In this document: positions 14,767 through 47,285 of the stretch, one piece after another
Layout: every line of letters begins with the position of its first letter
Numbering within the stretch: position 1 is the first letter of the stretch
Assembly (NCBI RefSeq): GCF_037042905.1
Contig: NW_026974141.1
Coordinates: 8,804,001-8,868,000, forward strand
Direction: 5' to 3'
Length of the DNA: 64,000 nucleotides
Source: Lytechinus pictus
Taxonomy: Eukaryota
Made by a program: the position numbers and the translations under genes
Notes under the pieces: generated by a model
Databases searched by the model: none
The model's input: only the letters and a program-made list of their open reading frames with translations
What the model was told of the DNA's origin: nothing

Positions 14767-17700
14767 GTAAAGTCTAATCATTTTGAGTTTCATTCATTTC
14801 GAGTTTGATGGTGCGTTTGAGTGTGAGTGTGAATTGGATTCAACTAACTCAAATTTAATTTTGTCTCACATTTTTGTAAAGCATTATCTACAAAAACTTG
14901 ACTATTTAAAGATAGAATTCAGAGAACTCAGAGGTAAATACCCATCATTTCGAGTTTGATTCATTTCGAGTTTGACGGTGAGTTTGAGTGTGAATTGGAT
15001 TCAACTAACTCAAATTCAATTTTGTCTCACCTTTTTGTAAAAGCATTCTCTACAAAAACTTGAATATTTAAAGATAGAATTTAGCATGAATTCACTATTT
15101 AATGATAGAATTTTATAAAGTATAGAAGTTTTCATTCAAAACTTAATTGACTCTTCAAAATTCATTCTTTGAAGAGTGAACGTTTTCTTTGTTATCATCA
15201 AGAGAGTATATTTTGGAATGAACTTGGGAGTTGGGGAAGTGTACTTCTGAAGCAAAGTTTTAAAACAAGTTTCCTTTTTACAATTACAGTTTGGATTAAT
15301 CCAAATATTTAATATTTTTTTATTTGTCTGAAAAATCTCAACCATCTGTAATTACTTTTTGCAAGGAATTGAGATTGTATTTTCAAATAATTCAACTCAA
15401 GGTCACATTCCAAACTATTAAGTTTTCAGTGTTTGAATTCAATAAGGGAATGCCTCTCGATTTTTCTGTCCTATGTTTGTTTTCTTTACTTGTAATAATA
15501 ATAATAATGTTCATCATCTTATGGTGTACATGTGGAAAAATGAATACTATAATTATTGATATTTCATGTATTATTTATTATTAATTATAATTATACATGT
15601 AGTTAAAATATATTTATAAATTCCTTATTTTCTATAGAAAAAACCCAGAGATTCAATAATTCTTTAATATCATACTCTGAACTAAATTTAATTTATTACA
15701 GTTTAAGGTTCAGTCCTTCAATTTTCACCAGGAGGAACCATTTTGATATCATAGTAAATTTCTTATTGTGGCCTAGACAATTTCTTTTGAAAACTCATGT
15801 GTATTAAAATTAATTGATTTATTATCATTTAATGCAAAAGTTTGTTAGCCCCCCATTAGAAAAAAAAATTGTGACAGTATTGAATTTTAAGATACGATGA
15901 TATATATTTTCGTCCATGAAGATTGCAAGAATATTAAAGGAAAAAGAGCATGATTTTTATGATTCGTGATCAGCTAGTGTTCCCCTGAAGTTTTTTCTTT
16001 CAAGGGCAAACAAATTTCATACCAAAAAGCTGTCAATTGTCAAGTGTGGCTAAATAAACACACTTTAAAAATAATCATTAGGAAAACACCCACTGATGTG
16101 ACAATGGATCGACTTGATTAAAGTTTTGATATATACATGTACAATAGAAAGAATGATTCAAATTATGAATCCTTCGATCATACAGCACATGCATGCATGA
16201 ACACATTGCTTTATTAGATATTTTGCTTTGATTTTAATACCTTGCTTTTGAATTTGGACAATAAAGAATGACTACACTAGTTATAGCTCTTTATGTTGCA
16301 TTGATTATAGTTTGAAATCATTTTAGTCCGAGGTACGATGCATGTAGATAGTTGAATTAGATTACATCATCAAGAAGTGGATGCGATGAAGGTGTTTAAA
16401 TTTTTTTGTTTGGGGTTTCTTCTGCCCGATTACATGTGGTGCTTTTTCTTGAATTACCCCACATACCCTTCTTGTTGAGCATGGAGCCCCATAAATTCTC
16501 ATTCTCAATTTCACGAAAAGCTTTGTTTTCTATTCACTGATTTAGACATGTTTTACAATTCATTATGCCGAAGCCATAACAAATTATGTTTCGAGTTTCA
16601 TTTTTCTAATTTTTTATTTTTTTTTTCAATGATACAAGAGAAAAATCATGTTTTTTTTTTAAAGCTATGTATTTTCTTTAAATTCCACTCGATGCTTGAT
16701 CTTGATGATTGTTTGCTGTTCGTTTGCTCAATACTTCTATTATCTTATGTTTGAATAACCATTACATGTTTATTGCATGAGTGCTTTTTATATAAAACAA
16801 ATGAAACATAATTATTCATGTTTGATTCTTAACCTTTTTTTCTTGATCTCAACCTTTTTATCTTAATTTCTTTCTCATCTACTCCATTTCGGTCCATCTT
16901 TTTATTTCTCTATCACCGCATCTGGCACCCTTTCTCCTCTTCCAATGCTGTTACATGCACGACACTCTGACCCCACCCTTCCTATAAAAAATGACCTCCA
17001 TTAAAAATTCTTCCCTCAAACTCTTCCCCCACTCAATTCCCACAACTTCCCCATTCCAATATCTTCCCCCCCCCCCGCCACCCTCTTTGCTTGATTGGCG
17101 TTGCATTCTCAAAACGTAACCCGCACACACACACCGAACTGACAACCCGTGTGCTCTATTAACTTCCACGCCCCCTTTCTTTGATGTGTATTGGTTGTCG
17201 TGGTAACGTCGGCATGCAGGGGCCGGAGCCGAACCCAGAAGACCCAGTGAGTATAGTTGTATGGTGAAGTATATGGGTCACACACAAAAAAGAAAAGAAA
17301 CATACATGTACCAATCCCAGTCCAAATCGGCCCCACCCCCACTGTAACAAATACTCCTGTGGGTGAAGGTTTACTTTCAATATATTTTATAATTCATGAT
17401 TATTTGGAGTTAAAGGTTATTATGATTTGTGAAGGGGGTATATAGATGTATTCATTTGAGTTTTATATATTTTTGGTTATTTGGCAATAATGTGTACTAC
17501 ATGAACGTGTGTTCTATGCAAGCAGTATCAGGTGCATATTGGTATTGGAAATTAATAACCATCCCGATATTAAACCCCTAATCAGTAAGTGATAACAGAG
17601 TAAAAGCATATTTGGAGGAACAATAACAAACATTTTTTTTGGACCAAGTTATTCATTTTAAAATACTAAACTCTATTTAATTACAAAAAGTAAAAGCCCC

Positions 17701-32700: not shown

Positions 32701-35700
32701 GCTTTAGCTTGGCAAGTTTTTTACAACGCACAAACATTGCAAGGAACCAACTCTTGCCAGATACCCATTTACCTCATCTGGGTTGAGTGCATCACGATGT
32801 GGATTATTATCTGTTTCTATTTTTGCTATACTAGGAACGAGATCTGTGAAGGCACTGACATCATCATGTGTCCGCTGTGTGATAAGAGATGTCCGTACTG
32901 GACGTTATCGGACAGTTGTTTCTACTCTAAGGTGAGTGAGAGATTGTTGTTCCATTGCCCATATTCTGAAGGTTGTGGTGTAACTATGGATAGCCAATTG
33001 TTTTTAATCTCAAACGAGAAAGATATAAATTGACAGCACATTCGATTCAGTGCTCTCTTCCTTCATAACTGTTTGTGAATGATGAATGAAATAGTTCTCT
33101 TCACCAAAAAAGCTTTGAAAGAGAACACTGAAGTTATTGGAAGCATACGATTTTAATAAGATTTTGTACATTTCGGATTTCCATGTTTTTAGCTCAGAGT
33201 TAGACCATGGCCAAGTTAAACCTGACTTCAGCATTTGGGCCCATATATACATTATCATCTGCATCCGTGAGTCTCGAAATATGATGATTAAGCGCTAGGT
33301 AATGCATTTCCTAGAGTGGTTGTACAGTACAGTCCCATAGAGTGGCAATCTCTAGAGCAATTTGTACAGATGAAGGAAAGTTGGTGCTGAGACAGATGTG
33401 CTGCCCTTCCCTTCCTCTTAGCTCTTCAGTTTGCTAGTTAAACACGCTGATCATTTCAACCTCTACCCTAAAAGAGACTTTTGTCACAATTGGCTGTCCA
33501 TACAATGTAGTTGAACCAAAGTCTAGACCAGAGTTTCAATTAAACCCAAGTTCTGAATACAAGCCTACATGTATGAATGCTACTGTGCTGTTATTATTAT
33601 CAATTGTGGAATCATTAGAATTTCATACATTTTTTCCGTCAAATCTCTCTTCACAGCTGACGTACCTGTTTGATAATGAAGCGACGGTCTTCTTTGCTTG
33701 TTTCATGTCCCTCTGGGGTGAGTATATTGAACTCATAGAGACACACAGCTTTCATAAGGTTTCAAACTTAATCTGCTTTTGATCCACAAATTGGCAACAA
33801 TTGTTGATTTTCATTACATTTTCATACTTTGAAAAATAGAATGTTGATATGACTTGATCAAAAGCTTAAAAAAAACCCATTTTATTAGTGATTTTGTTTC
33901 CATTACATTGCCAATTTGCATGTTATTAGTGATTTTGTTGTTTCCATTGCATTGCCAATTTAGAGTGTGTAATATGATAAAATTAATCTGTTTTTGGTCC
34001 TCAAATTGGCAGCAGTTGTTAGGTTTGTATTCATTATATCCATTGTCATACCTTAAAAATAGAATATGGATCTGACATGAGTGGATGAATAGAAGAAAAT
34101 GGTGCCGATTTATATTTTATTAGTTTAATATCTTATTATTTCCATTACTCTGCCAATTTAGAGTGTTAAATGATTTGCTTGATAATTGTGTCAAACAAAA
34201 TTCATGATGAACTCTACAATGCAAGTGTAAATGTGAGTTAGCGAACATCTTGAATTTTGATATAGAAATCAATTTTGTTATAAAGCTGTTTGATTGATCA
34301 GGAATTTAATATTTTTCTTTTCTTGTTTGTTAACTTATTTTTTTGTTTTTGCAGCCACCATGTTCTGTGAATTCTGGAAAAGAAGACAGAACACGATTGA
34401 CTATGACTGGGACTTGTTTGGCTTTGAAGAACAGGAGGTATGCTATAATCAGAACCAGCGGGTGTTACATAAAATAGATATACTTGATATTTACAATTGA
34501 TCATAACCTTTTGTACATGGTTTACTATAGACTTCAATTTATGTTTGATTGATGAATTTATTATATCTTGTATGTCATAGGAAGCTAGTTTTTAAAGTCA
34601 AAGTGATGAAAGTTCATAATATTAATCAGTGGCGGACCGTGACCCGGAGGAGACAAAGCATTGGAGGGGCACAGCATTGTTCACAAACAATACAGTGCCC
34701 TTCCAATCATTTGTCTCTCCGGGTCACGGTCCGCCACTGATATTAATAATAATAATAATAGTCAGTTCCTGTATAGCGCATAACACATTATGAATAACGT
34801 CTCTATGCGCTTCCAAAGGACTTGGATATTATTACCCCGGCTGTAGTTCAAGCAGCCTTTCCAGCGCTCGGCATTTCAAGGAATAAATTCCTGCCAGGTA
34901 CCCATTCACCTCACCTGCGTTGAGTGGAGCACAATGTGGATAAATTTCTTGCTGAAGGAAACTATGCCATGGCTGGGATTTGAACCCAGGACCCTCTGTT
35001 TCAAAGTCCAGAGACTAATCCACTGGGCCACAATGCTCCACAATTTGTTTCTTTTCTTATTTAAGTTTTTATTGAAAGTTAGTTTCTATCTTACCAGTGG
35101 CGTATTAAAAAAAAAAACGTGTGGAACAGAACATCGTGTATCAGAAAAATTTACTGGATTGTCGCAAATAAAGTTACCCTTTGAAAGTTGTGGTGGAATA
35201 GAACATAATCAACTAATTTTTATGTAAAATTACTATTACATGTAGGGCTTACAGTTGATTTTGGAACGTATGCTTGATTTGGCAATGAGTGCAAGTTTCT
35301 TGCAATGCCCCATAAGATGTTTGCCATTAAATCAATGCCAGAATTTCTTTTAATTTTCATAATAATTTGAAACCAAAAAAATATGCTACAAGAATATTTT
35401 CCCTCTTTTTAGGAGAACATTCGTCCTGAGTTTGAGGCCAAGGCACCAGACCGAAGAGTCAGTCCCATCACCAACGTAAGTTATTCAAATCATGTTTTCC
35501 TCCTATTTTCTTAACAGTTTGATCTCGCAGTAATATGTTAACAAACAATGTGAAAAATAGAATACTTCAGATGTCCACTTTCTCAACAGACACCTGTTCC
35601 AAAAAGAGTCTTAAAAATTATTGTCCCAAACAAATTACTTTATATTCATGATATATGAAATTATATAAAGAAGTACAATTCATTTTGGCATGAATAAGTT

Positions 35701-38700
35701 ATGACCAAACTTTTATTTTTGGAGAATAAAAAAAAATAATGATTTACTTCACTTAAATGAATAAAAAGATATTAATGAAAATTGAAGATTCCTTTCATAA
35801 TTTATATTGGAAGTAAATTCTGCAAAACAGATATTGATAGTGCCATATTTAGGGAAGTAATTTTGAATATGCAACCTTTGATGTGAATTTGATTATTCAT
35901 ATTACTCTGCCAGATGTTTGAGTTTATATCAATTATTTATGACAATGCATGGGCTCTGTTCCATTGAAGTTGTTATCAATGACATTTTAAAATACACTGC
36001 TTTAAGATAAAAAAAATCCTTGTCCATGATTTCCTGAGAGCAAGGTTGTCATCGAACATCTAATTACTGTTATGGAAACATGTTTTGTGGAACAGGGTTC
36101 ATTCAAACAGTGGTTTTTCTTTGTAGTGCTTGTTTCCAGATCATTTTGATGTTCTTTCACTTTATATTTCTGAGATTTTTTCCATTTATAATAAACATCT
36201 AGTGTGTTCATTGATGCCTCCTGTTTGATAATGCTGTAAAGCCTTCCTCACACTGACTGATTGATTGTTGCAACTGGATATTCATATAAATCGCAAAAAG
36301 ATGGGATATGGAGTTTCAAATTTTTAGGTGTATCTGACCGTGTTCCAAAATTATCTTCCAAACTTAAATTTTTCAATTTTTAGCTTTTAAGTCATAGGAG
36401 GGGCCAAACTGAATCCCAGTTGACCAGGGCCCTGTCTTACAAAGACTTATGATTGATCCAATCAATCTCAAGTATATGGAAATCCATCAATGGCATAATT
36501 TTTTCTGTAGGAAATTTGCTCAATGTCCTTTGAAAACAAAGAGAAGCATACTGAATTGTCAAGGAAAGCAGTAAACGTATGAACATACATCATTTCTACA
36601 AAATATTCTTGAACAAACATATCTATTAGATGTTGATGTTGCTGGCTTTCCATAGTTGTGGTTGATTGGGTCAGTGGCAACTCTTTGTAAGAAGGGCCCC
36701 AGCTGTGATTGGTGTGACCTCACTGTGACTTTGTCCCATTTTGCCATTGTCTAGAAATAAATGGGCCACCTGCAATCTTGGTATTCCTTTTCATTCAGGA
36801 TATCAATTCAAAAGAAAAGAATTTTCCTTGTAATTATTGTAGGCAACATCCTGATTTCTTTAAAAATAAGAAATCCAGTCGCAACCAATCACACAGTCTG
36901 AGGCAGGTTTGATATTGCCTCTGCTATTGATGCCATGCACGTTTTCCCCCCCAAAAGAAATATAATGCAACAATCATCATCTTGATCGTCTTCTTTTATA
37001 CTGACCAGTTCTTCTCCACTCCCTGTATGCAGAGGTGCCAAAAAACCCTTGTTTGGAAGCCGAAGAGATGGGAACCAGAAACAACTTTGAAATTATGGAT
37101 CTCCTGTCCTGTCATCTTGTTCTTTTGTGTGTCTCTCCATGTTTGCTGTTAAAAGTTTGTTCTCTTTTTCAGATTGTAAGAGGTTGGACAAAGGAACTTC
37201 TACTCACGGTCCCGTTTCATAAAGACTTGTTATAATAACAAATGTTCGAATTCTGTAACAAATCTACTATCAGCCAATCAGATTGAAGGATTTCAGTGTC
37301 TTACACGTATATCTGTGATTGTGTTATTATAACAAGTTTTATGAAACTGACCCCATGAATGAGTCTAAGTATGGAATACCAATTGCCAATTAATGATTGC
37401 TGATTGAACAAGTTCATTTCCAAGCCAACTCATTTTCATTTGCTTCTTGTGCACTATTGTACAATCGGTCACCATTAAATATCCCCTTTTCCACCCGAAT
37501 CTTGTAGAATCACGAGTCGTACATCAAACCGAGAAAGAGGTTCCCCCGTGTCTGGGCCTCGGTGCTGTCTGTCGTTTTCCTGGTGAGGAGATTTCAGAAA
37601 GGACCGTGAAAATGTCTCCACTTTGTAACATTTCTTGATGTGAACTAATATTATTTGCTTGATGCTTCTCAGGTTGATGCATTGTCGTCACTGGCTCGTG
37701 GATCGTGACCACACACCTTTCAAGTATTCTTAAAACCTGGGGAGCATTTCATGAAACAGTGAATTTCACTCACTACGTTATAAGCTACCAAAATCCTTGC
37801 ATCTGATTGGCTCAGAGCAAATGTGTATTTGAAAAACACTATTTCTTCCATGAAACAGTTCCCAGGCTTGCTATTTCAGTTTTCTTTTTTAATGTAAATT
37901 ATTGTCCAAATTAAAATGCATTCCGGTAGAGCGGGAGTCTTTGGATTTTCCACATTTGAATATAGACCCAAGCCAAGCAGCCATCCATTCCGACAGGAAC
38001 AACTATGCAATGTTTCATAAAGACTTGCTATTGTAGCTTGTCCAATGGTACGACTTGAATGAGTAGACCTTCCATAAGTTGAATATTCACTAAATTTTAT
38101 ACGATTTTGCAAAAAAAATTGTCATGTACCTTTTCTATTAAATCAAATTTCTCATGAGTCAAACAGGTTTCTGTTGTCCCAAAAGATTCAAAGGCAAATT
38201 TACCTGTTAAATGAAATGCCTAATTTTTATTGGCTGCTGAATCATAATGGCAAAGTTTTGAAGATCTCTATGAAACTAGGCCCAATTGAGACATTTTTGG
38301 GTCATATTATGAATGGGTAAAAAATAATATCTTTATCATAAATTGCTTGATTTTTTTTTTGGTGTTGGATAAGAAGAATGGATTCTCATCTAGGCATGAA
38401 TAATCAACATTTCTTTGTTTGCAGGCATCCTGACTGAAATGCACATTATTGGTGTTGATGATTTAAAACATATGCATTTTATATCAGGTTCACTTGAAAG
38501 CAAATATCTACCTGGTGATTGGATTATCTCCGAATATATGTTGGCAGGATCATGAATATTCATTATGTCTATATCACATTATGTCCTGTGGTTAAATTGT
38601 TTTCTTGTTACATTGCATATGTCCAATGTACATTTCAATGTGTGTTTTTGGATACATGAATATTCATTGATTCGTTTGAGAATATTCATGATGTATCCCA

Positions 38701-41700
38701 CCGCTGCCACCAAAATGTGAACAGCCATACATGATGCTCATGAATATTCAATTTATTTGTGATATTCATCTTGTATCCCACCGCTGCCACCAAATGGTGG
38801 ACAACCAAACACGATACTCATGAATATTCATAGATTGTGATTTGTTATTTGTTATGTGCATTCATGGTTCATGCTCACGTTTTCTTGATCATGTCACCTT
38901 TGTTTCTTAACATACGCTGTTTGACCGCATGACGTGTGAATTGATTTATGGCGCCCTCAGCTCACCGAGCCTTACATGAAGTTCTCGAAAAAGTTCCCAA
39001 GATTCTCGGCATCGGTTGCATCCATTTTCTTCATGGTGAGACTTGACAAGAATTCAACAAGAATTCAACATGAAAAACAATAACAAAGAAACCCCCGAAA
39101 TGCCAAATGTAGTTGCTATCCCAATGCGATGATTGTATCATTGCATTACTAGATGGCATCATGTTCATATCATACATAACTTTTGTGCATGTATTTCTCC
39201 ATTGTTGTGCATCTGATAATTCTGTGTAGCTCCCAGAGCCGTACATGAAGTTCTACCGTCGCTTCCCACGCTTTATGACGTCCATCACTACAATTGCGTT
39301 TATGGTGAGAGATTACGAACCGGTGCTTCCCGACAGCACACGGCAAATCCTTCTACCTTACAAACCCTGTTTTATGTTCAGTTGTGTCGCCTGGAACCCT
39401 CAAAGTGTATCTTCTACTCAACTAACCTTTGCAAATGCTTGCATATTTCACCTTCATCTACTTTTATTCGAGTGACTCTGACACTACTTTGTTTGCATCT
39501 TATCTGATTGCTATAATCTAACATTGGATTGGGTTTTGACTTCAAGTGTATATATCACGTAACTTTCTATCTTGCAATCTCTTGTATGTACACGCATTTA
39601 ACACTTGCAAACAATAGATGGCTGACAGCATCTTTTCCAACTATTCTTGTCAATTTCTTCCCCTTTATTTACCTTTTTGTTTCTTCACTCACTTATAATT
39701 TTCTTTTTGACCTATCATGCATGTTTATTTATCCTGATTCTGCTATTTTTCCACTATTCTTTCCTCGTCCACAGTGAATTTGATGAATCAGTTTGATTTT
39801 GTTCAGTCCTCTATGTAAATTGGTCTGTTTTGGGATCAGTCACTTGGTGTCTTTTGCACTAATTTTTAATTTGATCTTTTTTATTCTTTCTCCCTTCTTT
39901 CCAAAATTCACTCACTATGTGACATTACACTCTGTCTCGTGTGGTTCTGTCAAAATCGTATTTGATCATTTATGTCTGATCATACTCCTTAACAATATTG
40001 ATAATTGTTAATCGGGGCCGGGACAAATGTAATTCTATATATATTTCATTCCCCCCTTGAACATTGCTAAACTGATACAAATAAAAATATCTTCTAACTG
40101 CATTTCTTGCTAATATTGAAATAAAATCTGTTGGTACGTCCTCCAATTATTAATTTTATGCCATTAAAAAAATAATTTATGTACATGTGTATATTGGAAA
40201 CTTATATGCAAATTCATAAAATTCAAAATCATTAAAAATCATTCTTACTAAAACGAAAATTGGGATTCATGTTATTACAATATTCACTCCGCATACACAT
40301 GCAAATATCCAAATTAAATAACTGCGTATAAACTGTATTTGGTAAATGAAATTGTACTCGATTAATTAAAATTGTATTATAAAACTCAAAATTGTGTTTT
40401 ATTTAATATCAAATTGGGATTTGTGTCATTCATTCATTCATTCATTCATCATGCATTGCGACTTCCATTAACACCCTCAATCTCAAATGTGTGTGATCCA
40501 TGCCATTGATAATGCACCTCACAAAAACCACCCATGCATGTGGCAACTAAAACTTTGGATTCTGGATGACCTTTGGCCCATGGATGACCCCACGGCGTGA
40601 CCTCTATTAACCCTTGTGCGACCTGGTCAACTAACCTTACACCCTGGTGCACGTGCATGATGATGGCTTCCCCATGAGTTCTGGTAACACCCACACAATT
40701 TTCTCTCTTTTTCTTTACACATCTGCTGGGTTTTTTCTTGGATAACAAACATGACCCCTTGGTGACCTCTAATCTGACCTCATCCTGACCCCTGACACTG
40801 TATGTAATTACGGTGTCCCTTAATCCTGCTAACATCCACACAATCTTTTCTTGTTAATTACATATCTGCTGGGTTTTTCCTGGATAAAAAACATAACCCC
40901 TCTCTTAACCTTCCATCTGACCTCTGTTTTGACCCTTGACCCCTGTAGAGAGAGGAGCCATTTGTTCCCCTGAGAGTGCGATTTCCCCGCATCATAGGGG
41001 GTCTAGCGATTATCCTATTCATGGTAGGGTGAAATAATTATGTTACTTAAAGCCATACAAGATACTAACTGCCCTTTCACACGGTAAAAAATCGTAATTT
41101 GAATGATGATTCCAGTGAAAAATGAGGTTAATGGCGAATTTTTAGCACGTGTGAAACCAAACTAGAATGGCGAACGTTAATCACAACCACGAATTCAAAT
41201 TCTATTCCAGATGTGAATTCCAGTTAAGTTTCACTCAAATTACGGTATGAAGTTTCCGTGTGAAAGGTCTGATGATTCGAAAGATGAATTGCAATCATCA
41301 TTACAATGATGATTCAAGATTCACGTGTGAAAAGGCCCCTAGAGACTGCCACACAGAAATTCTATTAGCGCTAACACAGCACGAACAGTATTAAGCTCAG
41401 TCACTTTTTTCGGATTGTAATTTCAAATGTTGATCAAAGATGTAAACAACGCATTGTTACATCAGCATTGCTATGACATTATTGTAACAGGGCTTCTATT
41501 AAAGCATTGTTAGCACTACCAACGTTTCTGTGTGGCCTCCACAGTTATATACACTGTACAGTGTGTCCCAGAAAAAAGGAAACCTGGATTCCCACATCTT
41601 TTTCTTCAAAGGCAAATTAATCCTGATATTTCATTCACATCATCATACAATTCAATTATTCCTCTACATTTTGATACCTAATTAATTGACAAACACTTCA

Positions 41701-44700
41701 CCCATTAATGAGCAATACAAGTTGAAATTTTAATGTCAAAATCAGGTTTTGCAGAAAAATTGGACAAGATTGGTTTGTGATACGACAACCGTGCTTATTC
41801 GCTGATTGGCTCATTAGCATTTCTTTTGTATTATTTATTAAGTTTCTATCACTGATCCCTAATGAATGATTTGATAAGCTGTTGGTCTCAAATTAAAGAT
41901 GAGACTCCACTCTTACCATAAGTATCAAATTCATAGTAAAAACATTTTTGATAATTGTGAAATATATCTCTGAAAACAGGTTTCCTTTTTTTGCGAGACG
42001 CATTGTATAGTGCCATTGTGTCCTCAACAAGGCTAGATGCACGTTTTGATTCATTTTGTGATTGATGTGATTGCCCAACTTGAACCTACAATAAGTCAGC
42101 CAACATGAATTTGTATTTTTGACATAGTTTGAAAAATCTTTTAATGATTAAAATAATTACAGAATTAATCAATTAAAACCCATACATATTCTTCTATCTT
42201 GTGTTTCTTCTTTCAGAGGAGATTGAAAAAAAAGTTAACCTTTCAGTTCGTAATTTTCAAAATTTTGATTTAAAAAAAAACTCAAATAACTATTTTGGCT
42301 TAATACAAAGCAACTTACTGGTTTATTGTTTGTTTGAAGTTGGGTAGGACATTGCATTACTGAATGGATTTAGAGATTTCAAGCTTGGTGTTGACCGAAT
42401 GGTGTTGGCCTAGTTTTTATTTCAGCACAGCACCAGACTTGAATTGGAAGCAGGTGTTGGTGTTTAGCTTCATGAATCAATGATGTGCACAGCACCAAAC
42501 TTGTTCGAAAGCTGGTCTTGGTGTTGAGCTACATGTACATGAATCAATAATGTGCATAGCACCAAACTAGAATTGGAATCTGGTTTTGGTGTTTATAGCA
42601 GCATGTATTATTAATGTGATATTATGTATCATATTTTGTTTAAACCTTTCATTAAATGCCAAATCAGGCACAAACACCAAACTTGAACTCACCCAGTATG
42701 AATATTATAAATTTAGCAATATTTGTGACCATTAATTTTCACATACACTCACATGTATTATGCGCTAAGAAATGGGACAAGTGCAAATTTTGAACTATCA
42801 AAACATCATTTTCTCACCTTTTTTTAATTTAAAGGTAACAGCTTTTTTTTTTTAAGTGGGCTTGATGACAATAATCTGTTGCAAATGAAAGGAATGAGAG
42901 AATATTAGAACAAAAGATTGGTGTATTATTTGCTTCTACATGTATTAAATCACTTTATTGTGTTCTATTGTTATTGAAAATGGGTAGGTGGTATTGATAT
43001 TAAAACTCTGAGGTGGATATTGCATTAATAGAATTTATATTTGAAATATGTTTTAACTAAATCCCTTAACATAATGATATAGCCAAATCTCGGGAGAATA
43101 TTGTTTCCATTAAAACATAGAAGAACAAATTCAAATATTATCCAAATTAGTTTAAAAATGAGAGTGTTATGAACATTTAACAAATCTGAATTATTGAATT
43201 GACAAGATAACTTCATATGGAATACTTGAAAAGTTCAACACCTGACAGTGTTTTTTCCATCATGTACAATTTCCAGATTCTTTTGTGAAATATATGTAGT
43301 TTCCACAGTCTTCAATTTTTAGGAAATGTCAATTAAAAAAAAATCACATAAATTAATGATAAAACTTATAACTCTCATTTTGCCATTCATTTGTGTAGAT
43401 AGCGCTTTTGACAAATTATCTTTTCTGTCCCCACTTTTCTTTGAAATTAATGTAAATTAGTGATCAGGTTCAGTGTTTTTGAAGATTTTGTGTGGACTAA
43501 ACATGAATATATTTGTGGTTTCTGATTATTTGCTGTACTGATCTTTGTATAATAATATACTATTACTATATCTCTTTTAATATAACTATATGTAAATCAC
43601 ATTCGTTCTCATAGACAGATTTTGTTTTCAAGTTTTCAATCTTGTATGGCTCTTTAACAGTTATTCAATATAGATGTACGTTGCTAATCTTCATTGTATA
43701 GAAGAGTATTATTGACTGTCTAATCAAATTGAATGAATCTTTATAGAGAGATTCCATCAACCATTTGCAAACATATACCTGGTGAATTTCTATTCAGAAG
43801 AATTTAAGCATGTATGGCATTTCAGAAAGTTCAAATCCTCTACAATAAAGCATTTTTCTTCAAGTACATGGACATATTAATTTGAAAGGGACATAAATAT
43901 ATCGCAAAAGAAGCCTCTGCATTCCCCCCCCCCAAGAAAAAAAAAAGACATTTAAACATATGCTTGTTCGAGTTTGTCAATAATGTAATGTACAAACTCT
44001 GTTCATAATTTTATTGATAGAGATCCCCCAAACCTTTTAAGCACCCCCCCAAAAAAAAACTCTTCAGCAATATCTACATTTCCATATGTACGGTATGCCA
44101 GTGTATATTATGTAGTGTGTATTGCATAACTATATACATGTACATACAGAAGCAGAAGCTTATTAGGTATTGGAAGTGCTAGGTGTTTGCGGATGGTTGA
44201 TGTCTTCTTTCCTCCCTGAATAAGTGTTCTCTATGGCCCGTATTCTGAAGTCGGGTTTAACTTTAACTCAGGTTTAAAGTTGTGGTTTAAGTATGGATAG
44301 CCAATTGTTACATAAATTAGTAACAGTAGAGATATCACATTTCAGCTCATTTGGCTTTCAAATCTTTCATAATTGTGTAGGAAGTATGAATAGATAATTG
44401 TCTACATCAATGATAAAGAGCAAAGTAAACATAAACATACAACTTAATAGAAATGTTGACACTTTTGGCTTCCCATAATTTTAGCAGAGTTAAACCATGG
44501 TCTAAGTTAAACCTGACTTTAGAATACGGGCCTATATGTGTATCTAGTTACTGGTGCATTCACCCCCCTGTTCATTTTCTTTGGGACGGGGGTGTTCCAT
44601 GCTTACCAATGGGCTGTTAAAACTCTTGTACAGTATCTCAAAATGTAAAGATTTTGAAGACAGCGTAGAAAATGTTTTATATTAGATTTATGATAAAAGC

Positions 44701-47285
44701 AACCTTCTTTTATCTAGAATTAGTTCTTCCCATGAATAAGAAGACCGTTTTCTAGCACTATGAGGTTGCCACCAGTGCTGCCATATGGCTATTTCTGAGC
44801 TGCCTCATTAAAAATAAAAATTCTAGATAGTTTTAACAGCCCATTGACAGTATACTGACATATCAATAATTCATGGATATTGATTTTTTACCCCTATACT
44901 ACCTATACCTATGTAAACTACTCAAAACTGTTTTGATAACTTTCAGTAATATGAATATATTGTTCATTACCAGCCACCCTGAAACCAATATGTCACCCAA
45001 AATGAAGTTTAAAATTTTTATTTAAAGTGATTGGTTAACATTGGTTTGACTTTGAAAAAATCTGAGCTAGAAGGTCACACTTGTCACCTGTGTCTGTGAT
45101 ATGTTACAAAAATGAAGCCCAGAAAAAAATTGCGTTTGAAAATAATTATTTAGTGCTTCAAAAATTGAAATATAAAGTGACTGAAAACACCATCTTAATT
45201 TCATCCCATACACTTATGTGTACTATTTAGGCGTCTATAAGACGCCTATTTACAAAATCGGGGTTTGCCTTGTAGTTTAAGCTTTTCATTCTCTATAATG
45301 GTTGTTTTCAGAGTTTATTAGTTCTAATACATGCACTTGTACACATGTTTCATCTTGGTTTGAGAATTATTTAAATCGGCTGCTCACAAAGTTAAACAAT
45401 ACCTTTAACATGCAAAATCACATCCTAAAATGATATATAACTTTTCAAAATTGATCAACAATAACCCTCACAGGTACTCAATTGTAAGCAGAATAAATTC
45501 TGCAGAAGCTTGAAAAATAAAGGATAAAACAAGGGTTGAAGTTTGGGGTTCACTTGAACATGAGATATGCGCAGAGTGCAATCTCAATGAAGCTTTCAAG
45601 CAATCTGCTAAAAATGGTTACTGAAGAAACTTGTATCTTTGATTTTGATTCACCTTTACCACTGCAAATTTGGCAGTGTGAAGAAGAATTACTCTTTCAG
45701 ATAATTAATTTTCATATTTTTGCTCTTTGAAGACCCAATTACTATTTTGACTATTTACAAATAACATTCCCTGACAACTTACTGTTGGCTTTGGGGTGAC
45801 TGGTCATATTTGATTTGCTTCTATCATTTATAATCAATTATTATATTTTCATGTACTGTGTCACTTTATATTCTTATACAAATTCTATGATAAAGCAATG
45901 TTTATTTAATTTTATTTGTTCTTATTACGTTTAAAAAAATGCATGAAAAGTGACCCTATTTGGCATGGACAACACTTTTATTGATTTATCAGCAATTTAT
46001 TTTTTTCAAATTTTAAATTATGCACTGCCTAACGAATGAGGAAATTATGCACATTTGCAAAGCATTCTTTGCATTACTTTCCAAATGAAATTTGCAGATA
46101 TTTAAATTTTCACTCTAGTGCATTTTGCAAATCATAATTTTTGGTATCTCATGGAAATATTAAGTATATACATGTATGCTCTAACATTTACATTGAAGAA
46201 ATATGATTCAGAATCATTTAAGTATTCTTTTATTTATTAAATTGTAATTAAATGGATACATGAGAAGTTCAATTTATCAAGAGTAAATCACCTTGAGATT
46301 TATTTTGGTTCAGAATAAACTTATATTAACAGCAGATTATTCTAAAGGTCCCCTTGAAGAGCCTTATCTCTCAGTATTCAGAACTTCCAAATTAACACCA
46401 CATTACACAAAGCCATATAGAGACTGAATATCTGTTATTCAGAGTAAATTTTGAGTTGATACAAATATTTCTAAAAGAAGTATAAAAATTGTCATATTAT
46501 GGGCTTGAACCACTGTTTAAAGATTAAAAAACAAAACCAAAACAACCCCAAACAATGATTGTTTGAAGGGGGATGGGGGTATTTTTTTCTTAGAATACCT
46601 AAGTTGAGGGAAAATCTAACTGATTTCCTTTTGGTCTTGTGACCAATTTTCTCCCTAAATGCCTCTCTAGATTCTGCTCGTCATGGCAGCTGTCATGACC
46701 GTCATCATCTACAGAATCGTCGTCAAGGCAGCCATCTTCTCAATCGACCAGGAATTCATCTCATCTTTCTCCTCCATCATCACCTCGGTAACGGCTTCCT
46801 GCATCTCTCTCATCCTCATCATGATCCTTCAACTGGTGAGTATCATACTTCATGCACAATATATCCTGAAGGGGTGGCATAAACATTATGAAAAGCAATG
46901 GACCAGTGATAGAGCCTTGAGGGATTCCATGGCTCATGATGTTTTCACATGGTGACTGCTGAGCTACAAAACCACCAATAAAGTGTGGTTTTCATTTGCA
47001 TACCTCATGTATCATATAGAGTGTGTCAGTAGGATATCCTGAAGGGAATATATAACCATTGTGAAAAACAGTGGACCAGTGATGGAGCCTTGTGGGACTC
47101 CACACCTAATCATGATTTTTTGACATGGTGAGTTTTTTATTTCTCTGCCAAACCCAAAACCTGTGTTGCTATCACTTGCATACTTGCATACAAGCTCATA
47201 GAGCTTACTCTGTATGATGCTCCACTCATGTATATATATATAACATGAATGATTATACTAATATGAATATTATGTAATGTTGAAA

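Follow-up and report, generated by a model that had tools for sequence, protein, structure and literature searches.

The window analysed here is a 64,000-nucleotide (nt) stretch of the genome of the sea urchin Lytechinus pictus (contig NW_026974141.1, positions 8,804,001 to 8,868,000 of the forward strand), and positions given without a further label are counted from its first letter. We identified the gene in this window as the L. pictus anoctamin-4-like gene, since its exon translations are identical to RefSeq isoforms. The gene carries a cluster of four paralogous alternative exons (A to D), each 75 nt long and in phase 0, which code for the anoctamin segment leading into the third transmembrane segment (TM3). 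The element under study is a stretch of about 1.1 kilobases (kb) directly upstream of exon D, from which the dinucleotide AG is almost absent on the + strand. The exons of the cluster and the constitutive exons on either side are listed below; positions labelled L002 belong to the locus of Strongylocentrotus purpuratus, and a slash marks a splice junction.

35413-35475, + strand: upstream constitutive exon, with one donor (35476) for all four alternatives (tblastn with P0003; exact peptide in L. pictus isoforms; RNA joint)
37508-37582, + strand: alternative exon A, 75 nt, phase 0-0 (S. purpuratus L002 41273-41347, 76% amino-acid identity)
38961-39035, + strand: alternative exon B, 75 nt (exact peptide in P0023, P0143, P0149, P0150 and P0152)
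39230-39304, + strand: alternative exon C, 75 nt (RNA joints; isoforms P0140, P0144, P0147, P0148 and P0151)
40947-40948, + strand: acceptor AG of exon D; past the 5′ boundary of the AG-poor stretch it is the first YAG and the second AG (RefSeq ...PITN/REEPFVPL...)
40949-41023, + strand: alternative exon D, pre-TM3 segment into TM3 (exact peptide in isoforms X16 (P0142) and X30 (P0145))
46671-46835, + strand: downstream constitutive exon, joined to whichever alternative is picked (isoforms)

The alternative exons always occur singly in the listed L. pictus isoforms, with five isoforms carrying B, five carrying C and two carrying D, while exon A was found in 0 of 15. The isoforms with exon D read PITN/REEPF, indicating that this exon starts at 40949 and that its acceptor is the AG at 40947-40948. 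In nine ambulacrarian species, annotated isoforms carry a D-type exon as their only choice, namely in L. pictus and eight others (S. purpuratus, Diadema, Apostichopus, Patiria, Asterias, Anneissia, Antedon and the hemichordate Ptychodera), and the swap of the pre-TM3/TM3 segment in this anoctamin is an old regulatory choice kept across ambulacrarians. RNA reads were mapped to 35350-41150 from three runs depleted of ribosomal RNA (X20 to X22, about 6% of each) together with the contig set X1. The sole junction seen from the common donor was 35475 to 39230, with GT..AG ends, supported by 8, 10 and 4 reads in X20 to X22 (22 in total) and by one X1 contig at a depth of 201; exon C was the only alternative seen in use.

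The AG-poor stretch is defined by the following features.

39838-39839, + strand: last AG preceding the zone, its 5′ boundary (AG listing)
39840-40946, + strand: AG exclusion zone, 1107 nt with one GAG (AG counts, shuffles, gap distribution)
40676-40678, + strand: sole AG of the zone, specific to L. pictus and part of GAG, a weak acceptor context (S. purpuratus aligned: CCA-AAC)

On the + strand, AG is found at 39838, 40677 and 40947 with nothing in between, which gives consecutive AG gaps of 839 and 270 nt, the former being the longest in the window. Our recount agrees with the initial annotation of this DNA, which had described a single AG, in the context GAG, within 39840-40946 and a long AG-free first part. 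The 1107 nt comprise 321 A, 246 C, 144 G and 396 T (29, 22, 13 and 36%), so that 41.8 AGs are expected from base composition, against one observed. The number of CT, the reverse complement of AG, was 85 against 88 expected, indicating that the depletion is strand-specific. Moreover, 20,000 mononucleotide shuffles of the zone gave a mean of 41.7 AGs and a minimum of 21. Without low complexity, the zone has an expected AG count of 34 + 7. Its excess of TG and GG follows arithmetically from the barring of G after A in a CpG-poor sequence. Across the whole window, AG-to-AG gaps have a median of 13 nt, a mean of 20.7 nt and a 99th percentile of 109 nt, and only three N-free gaps exceed 200 nt: the two described here and one of 438 nt that precedes a putative microexon of this gene. 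Other acceptors in the gene are preceded by AG-free stretches of 20-75 nt.

We compared the window with the loci of S. purpuratus, Acanthaster, Patiria, Holothuria and Anneissia. No dispersed-repeat copies of the zone were found in the 380 kb compared (the window and these five fetched loci), barring a local 145-nt tandem duplication, and an Rfam scan of the zone gave no family match at E<=1. In S. purpuratus, the ortholog of exon D (L002 44046-44120, 80% amino-acid identity) is preceded by an AG-free zone of 839 unbroken nt (L002 43206-44043) that runs up to the same acceptor. This zone contains 0 AGs against 28.6 expected and 70 CTs against 72 expected. The zones of the two urchins align over 817 ungapped columns with 68% identity, that is, with 32% of the columns differing; the 3′ half forms a conserved block, and the AT-rich centre is hardly alignable. 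When neutral substitution was simulated on the S. purpuratus zone in 20,000 runs, a mean of 21.5 new AGs arose, with a minimum of 5 and P(<=1)=0. The AG-free state of both zones despite 32% divergence indicates that AG was removed by selection in both lineages, and we conclude from the aligned sequences that AG is selected against in the zone. The initial annotation had suggested looking for AG depletion in the orthologous intron, and the S. purpuratus zone provides it; these comparative data support its core proposal that the branch point is very distal or that cryptic acceptors are strongly selected against.

The S. purpuratus locus has other long AG gaps, but these consist of CT microsatellites or of very pyrimidine-rich sequence with expected AG counts of 0-5, and are different in kind. 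Two of them (L002 36709-37283 and 35859-36208) are CT repeats with an expected AG count near 0. Another, of 849 nt (L002 65871-66720), extends up to the acceptor of an alternative C-terminal exon (AG/CATTTCGTCCTATTCACCAAG...). It holds 12% A and 5% G with 4.8 AGs expected, and its L. pictus counterpart (61319) measures 67 nt only; being very pyrimidine-rich, this gap is largely compositional.

We then examined sequences in the zone that could serve as a branch point for exon D.

39857-39863, + strand: CACTAAT, best candidate for a distant branch point (motif scan; aligns with S. purpuratus AGCTAAC)
39870-39904, + strand: pyrimidine tract adjoining the distant candidate (kept in S. purpuratus)
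40827-40833, + strand: TGCTAAC, proximal branch-point consensus, A at 40832 (-117) (S. purpuratus GGCTAAC at -62)

The predicted branch A of the distant candidate, at 39862, lies 1087 nt before exon D, and its S. purpuratus equivalent (L002 43210) lies at -836. In the 1644-nt intron between exons C and D, only two 30-nt windows reach 87% pyrimidine or more, and the adjoining tract is one of them. In 5/5 eleutherozoans, the AG bounding the stretch is followed within 21 nt by CURAY and then by a 30-mer of 73-83% pyrimidine. The CURAY forms are CACTAAT in L. pictus, AGCTAAC in S. purpuratus, TTCTAAC in Acanthaster, AACTGAC in Patiria and TACTAAC in Holothuria. This candidate was missing from the initial annotation, which had named three other sites. 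ACTAAC at 39421 has five AGs downstream of it (39627, 39773, 39790, 39805 and 39838) and so breaks the first-AG rule, and S. purpuratus does not share CTAAC at 40094. The third, ACTAAC at 40630, is conserved and possible as a branch point, but only as a minor candidate.

We further compared the AG-free stretch before the D-type exon among the echinoderms, with the following lengths.

Anneissia (crinoid): 41 nt, ordinary
Holothuria (sea cucumber): 116 nt
Acanthaster (starfish): 129 nt
Patiria (starfish): 171 nt, the joint longest gap in its 80-kb locus
S. purpuratus (sea urchin): 839 nt
L. pictus (sea urchin): 839 + 270 nt (1109)

In the two starfish and the sea cucumber, the elements follow one another as in the urchins, over just 116-171 nt. 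The order of branch point, pyrimidine tract, UGCAUG and acceptor would be ancestral to eleutherozoans, with a spacing of about 100-170 nt, and this spacing would have grown to 0.84-1.1 kb in sea urchins.

Inside the zone, the following features were recognised.

40535-40540, + strand: TGCATG (Rbfox-type) in the conserved block CCATGCATGTGGCAACTAAAAC (kept in S. purpuratus)
40654-40659, + strand: second conserved TGCATG, in GTGCATGATGATGGCTT (kept in S. purpuratus)
40672-40816, + strand: copy 1 of a tandem duplication of about 145 nt, specific to L. pictus, just 5′ of exon D (repeat search)

TGCATG was found within the AG-free stretch in 5/5 eleutherozoans, and in Acanthaster, Patiria and Holothuria it precedes the exon by 26-40 nt; its counts are modest, with two in L. 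pictus, four in S. purpuratus and one in each outgroup. Upstream sites of the Rbfox family usually repress the exon. As in Rbfox-regulated exons, a conserved (U)GCAUG lies near the exon, here upstream of the D-type exon in five echinoderms, which suggests that exon D may be regulated through UGCAUG. The conserved 3′ half of the zone also holds GGCAACTAAAAC, GGTAACACCCA and runs of TGACC/URAC. TGACC(T/C) occurs in at least 10 copies in 40560-40947, the last 390 nt before exon D, and is found in S. purpuratus too; it is the reverse complement of the nuclear-receptor half-site AGGTCA and also resembles a branch point in the form CUGAC/UUGAC.

The second copy of the tandem duplication occupies 40817-40960. 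The copies are 83% identical, and S. purpuratus has a single copy. The lone GAG sits in copy 1, the older-looking one. The acceptor in copy 2 is part of TGTAG, and copy 1 has TGTATG at this place. We considered the duplication as a natural experiment of AG loss and rejected it, as the boundary of the duplication is not exactly placeable.

Selection of the first AG after the branch is a known process that makes every downstream AG harmful, and the purging of AG across the whole 0.84-1.1 kb implies that branching takes place at the 5′ edge, or close to it, with a frequency that matters. On balance, we favour the reading that this is a real AG exclusion zone kept by selection and that exon D is probably spliced through a branch at the distant unit on the 5′ edge. 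When exon D is chosen, the U2 small nuclear ribonucleoprotein would form a branch at, or also at, the unit of CACUAAU and tract, with A at about 39862, and the second splicing step would then take the first suitable AG downstream, at 40947-40948. AGs arising between the branch point and 40947 would act as wrong acceptors and be purged for that reason, and the weakest context, GAG, would be tolerated. The conserved elements between branch point and exon (two UGCAUG and the URAC runs) probably control the use of exon D. Both the identity of the branching adenosine and the selection of the first AG over a kilobase are predictions from the sequence.

Several observations weigh against the distant branch point. 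The runs and contigs described above contained no coverage of exon D or of the zone and no back-joining (lariat) reads. In runs matched by 40800-41040, unspliced sequence only was found (shares 0.5-0.88), with which spliced and unspliced use are indistinguishable; the use of exon D in L. pictus is thus taken from RefSeq models and coding conservation. With 0 exon D reads in the runs examined, the initial statement that the distal branch point or the selection governs the choice of exon D goes beyond the data. The arrangement of CURAY and pyrimidines follows 0.3-0.9% of AGs per locus, a background that is not conditioned on an adjoining long AG-free, and hence pyrimidine-enriched, stretch. Moreover, the sequences of L. 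pictus and S. purpuratus are homologous and not independent, and the distal motif in L. pictus is CUAAU, not CUAAC. The main branch point, or an additional one, could be the nearer CTAAC, which is conserved at -117 in L. pictus and at -62 in S. purpuratus. Predicted folding shortens the distance from branch point to acceptor no more than it does in dinucleotide shuffles. The minimum free energies were -201.8 and -152.5 kcal/mol and the structural path lengths 32 and 27, all of them like those of shuffles, and an RNA structure that brings the branch point near the acceptor was rejected as uninformative.

The most serious rival places the branch for exon D mainly at this proximal CUAAC (40832) or in the URAC run on the acceptor side and regards the upstream 0.7-1 kb without AG as protection: spliceosomes would occasionally assemble on upstream branch-point-like motifs and tracts, and any AG there would compete with the acceptor of a weak regulated exon or act as a decoy for it. 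Besides the CTAAC kept in both urchins, it draws on the numerous URAC motifs in the last 100 nt and on the branch point of starfish and sea cucumber, predicted at about -100 to -110, near the proximal site of L. pictus. In human minigenes, distal branch points add modestly relative to those in the expected zone (PMC5378181). However, AGs that lie 5′ of a functioning branch point are as a rule neutral, and their complete purging over 700-970 nt in two lineages needs frequent upstream branching, which comes close to the distant branch point that we favour. In addition, the 5′ edge of the zone coincides in both urchins with a conserved branch-point motif and pyrimidine tract, and the TGCATG of the outgroups lies between branch point and acceptor, an order that the urchins keep only with the distal site. 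We therefore consider a mainly proximal branch point unlikely, though clearly the strongest of the alternatives.

AG might also be avoided for a reason other than its action as an acceptor, such as the exclusion of enhancer-type sites (GAAG, UAGG) of a purine-motif RNA-binding protein from a silencing or regulatory region, or another constraint on the transcript. The conserved non-coding 3′ half with TGCATG, GGCAACTAAAAC and repeated TGACC would fit such a constraint, and no reads tying the zone to branch formation were found in the runs and contigs described above. However, all contexts of AG are missing rather than a single motif, the poorly conserved AT-rich centre is equally AG-free, the zone extends from a branch-point motif with a tract exactly to the used acceptor, and the sole tolerated AG is in the poorest acceptor context, GAG (PMC7969005). 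Such a constraint thus appears very improbable. Chance, composition or a functionless pyrimidine-rich or repetitive insert is the last explanation to be weighed. Compositional gaps do exist, as the CT repeats of S. purpuratus described above illustrate, a zone of 369 nt was attributed to a repeat (Gooding et al. 2006, PMC1431707), and L. pictus gained 145 nt through its tandem duplication. On the other hand, with 29% A and 13% G some 42 AGs are expected and shuffles never fell below 21, CT on the same strand is as frequent as expected, the AG-free state was kept in S. purpuratus at 32% divergence, and no further copies occur in the 380 kb compared. This explanation is already refuted for practical purposes.

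The kind of element proposed here, in which an AG exclusion zone separates a distant branch point from a regulated exon, is already known. AG exclusion zones flag distant branch points at regulated and at mutually exclusive exons (PMC1431707; PMC5378181), and the class of Gooding et al. 2006, including PTB exon 11 and the alpha-actinin smooth-muscle (SM) exon, is alike in several respects. A long AG-free stretch extends up to the used acceptor of a regulated exon, a branch-point consensus with an adjacent tract stands at its 5′ end, as was used for prediction there (PMC1431707), regulatory motifs lie between branch point and exon, and the stretch is conserved in the orthologue. Accordingly, the present stretch is far longer than 100 nt, begins with a consensus and tract, shows excess conservation and precedes an alternative exon. 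Unlike that class, it measures 839-1109 nt and is kept across two urchin families, it comes from echinoderms, and its branch point is predicted. The duplicated, mutually exclusive exons 2/3 of alpha-tropomyosin and 4a/4b of OGDH (PMC7969005) are also alike, with a downstream exon that has a distant branch point (a candidate here), a pyrimidine tract and a long AG-free stretch. In the OGDH of one fish, a GAG 'spoiler' is tolerated and YAG is purged (PMC7969005), similar to the lone GAG and absent YAG here. A difference from both genes is that the present cluster has four exons, not two. Exclusivity through steric hindrance was rejected, as the candidate branch A lies 557 nt from the donor of exon C in L. 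pictus (39305 to 39862) and 575 nt from it in S. purpuratus (42635 to 43210), far more than the few tens of nt over which steric hindrance acts.

The distant-branch-point zones that have been mapped in vertebrates span 100-400 nt (PMC1431707), and predicted zones reach 1126 nt in human PTPRS (229 nt in mouse) and 590 nt in Fugu PTB exon 11 (Gooding et al. 2006, PMC1431707). The initial statement that such zones are usually at most a few hundred nt needs correcting, since the predicted zone of PTPRS is a precedent at the kilobase scale. What is new here is a kilobase-scale zone under selection in two genera, a traceable growth from a short ancestral form, and an echinoderm case. The predicted distance of about a kilobase from branch to acceptor at exon D would be among the longest proposed. 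We also put forward, as a tentative proposal to which we give slightly less than even weight, that urchin spliceosomes routinely branch about 0.84-1.1 kb before the acceptor used, that no other natural, conserved branch point known would be so distant, and that the zone would be one of an echinoid class of kilobase-scale AG exclusion zones. Mapped distant branch points end at a few hundred nt. If the proposal is true, echinoids would be a natural system for second-step AG finding a kilobase away. One orthologous exon offers a natural series of branch-point-to-acceptor distances, from about 100-170 nt in starfish and sea cucumbers to 0.84-1.1 kb in the two urchins. The positions 39862 and 40832 can be tested against each other, and embryo injection and morpholinos are routine in this organism.

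Some further observations were made within the cluster. Exon B also has a longish AG-free stretch before it, of 127 nt in L. pictus (with sparse AGs farther 5′; 38546-38959) and 172 nt in S. purpuratus (L002 42126-42298), and more than one exon of the cluster may have a moderately distant branch point. Just 5′ of the distant candidate, 39627-39830 includes a 146-nt AG-free pyrimidine-rich stretch leading up to a good acceptor-like site, ttctttcctcgtccacAG (39773), and a donor-like GTAAAT follows at 39826, about 50 nt past 39773. In S. purpuratus, cactgacttttcctcttAG and GTGAAT are roughly aligned with them. This segment may represent a small exon of the decoy or poison type, or else a U1 site next to the branch point; use of the 39773/39826 sites was not supported by any reads in the mapped runs and contigs. 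A fifth exon, 'A2' (37818-37893), was rejected, as it has the wrong phase and sits in a repeat read on both strands. In every RNA run, the segments 37678-37871, 36320-36707 and 37096-37300 were deeply covered by reads of either strand and had inverted-strand joints and numerous loose ends; they are dispersed or inverted repeats outside the mRNA of the gene.

A second AG-free zone was found in the same gene at 16780-17246, with 436 nt (438 from AG to AG) and 0 AGs against 10 expected. It ends in TGCATGCAG at a putative microexon of 27 nt (GGGCCGGAGCCGAACCCAGAAGACCCAG/GTGAGT). Similarly, its S. purpuratus counterpart (L002 16515-16927) is 410 nt long (412 from AG to AG), has 0 AGs against 8 expected and shares the same GCATGCAG/GGGCCGGAGCCGAA junction. 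With this second zone in the same gene, long AG-free zones may form a class in urchins, of which the one at exon D is not the only case.

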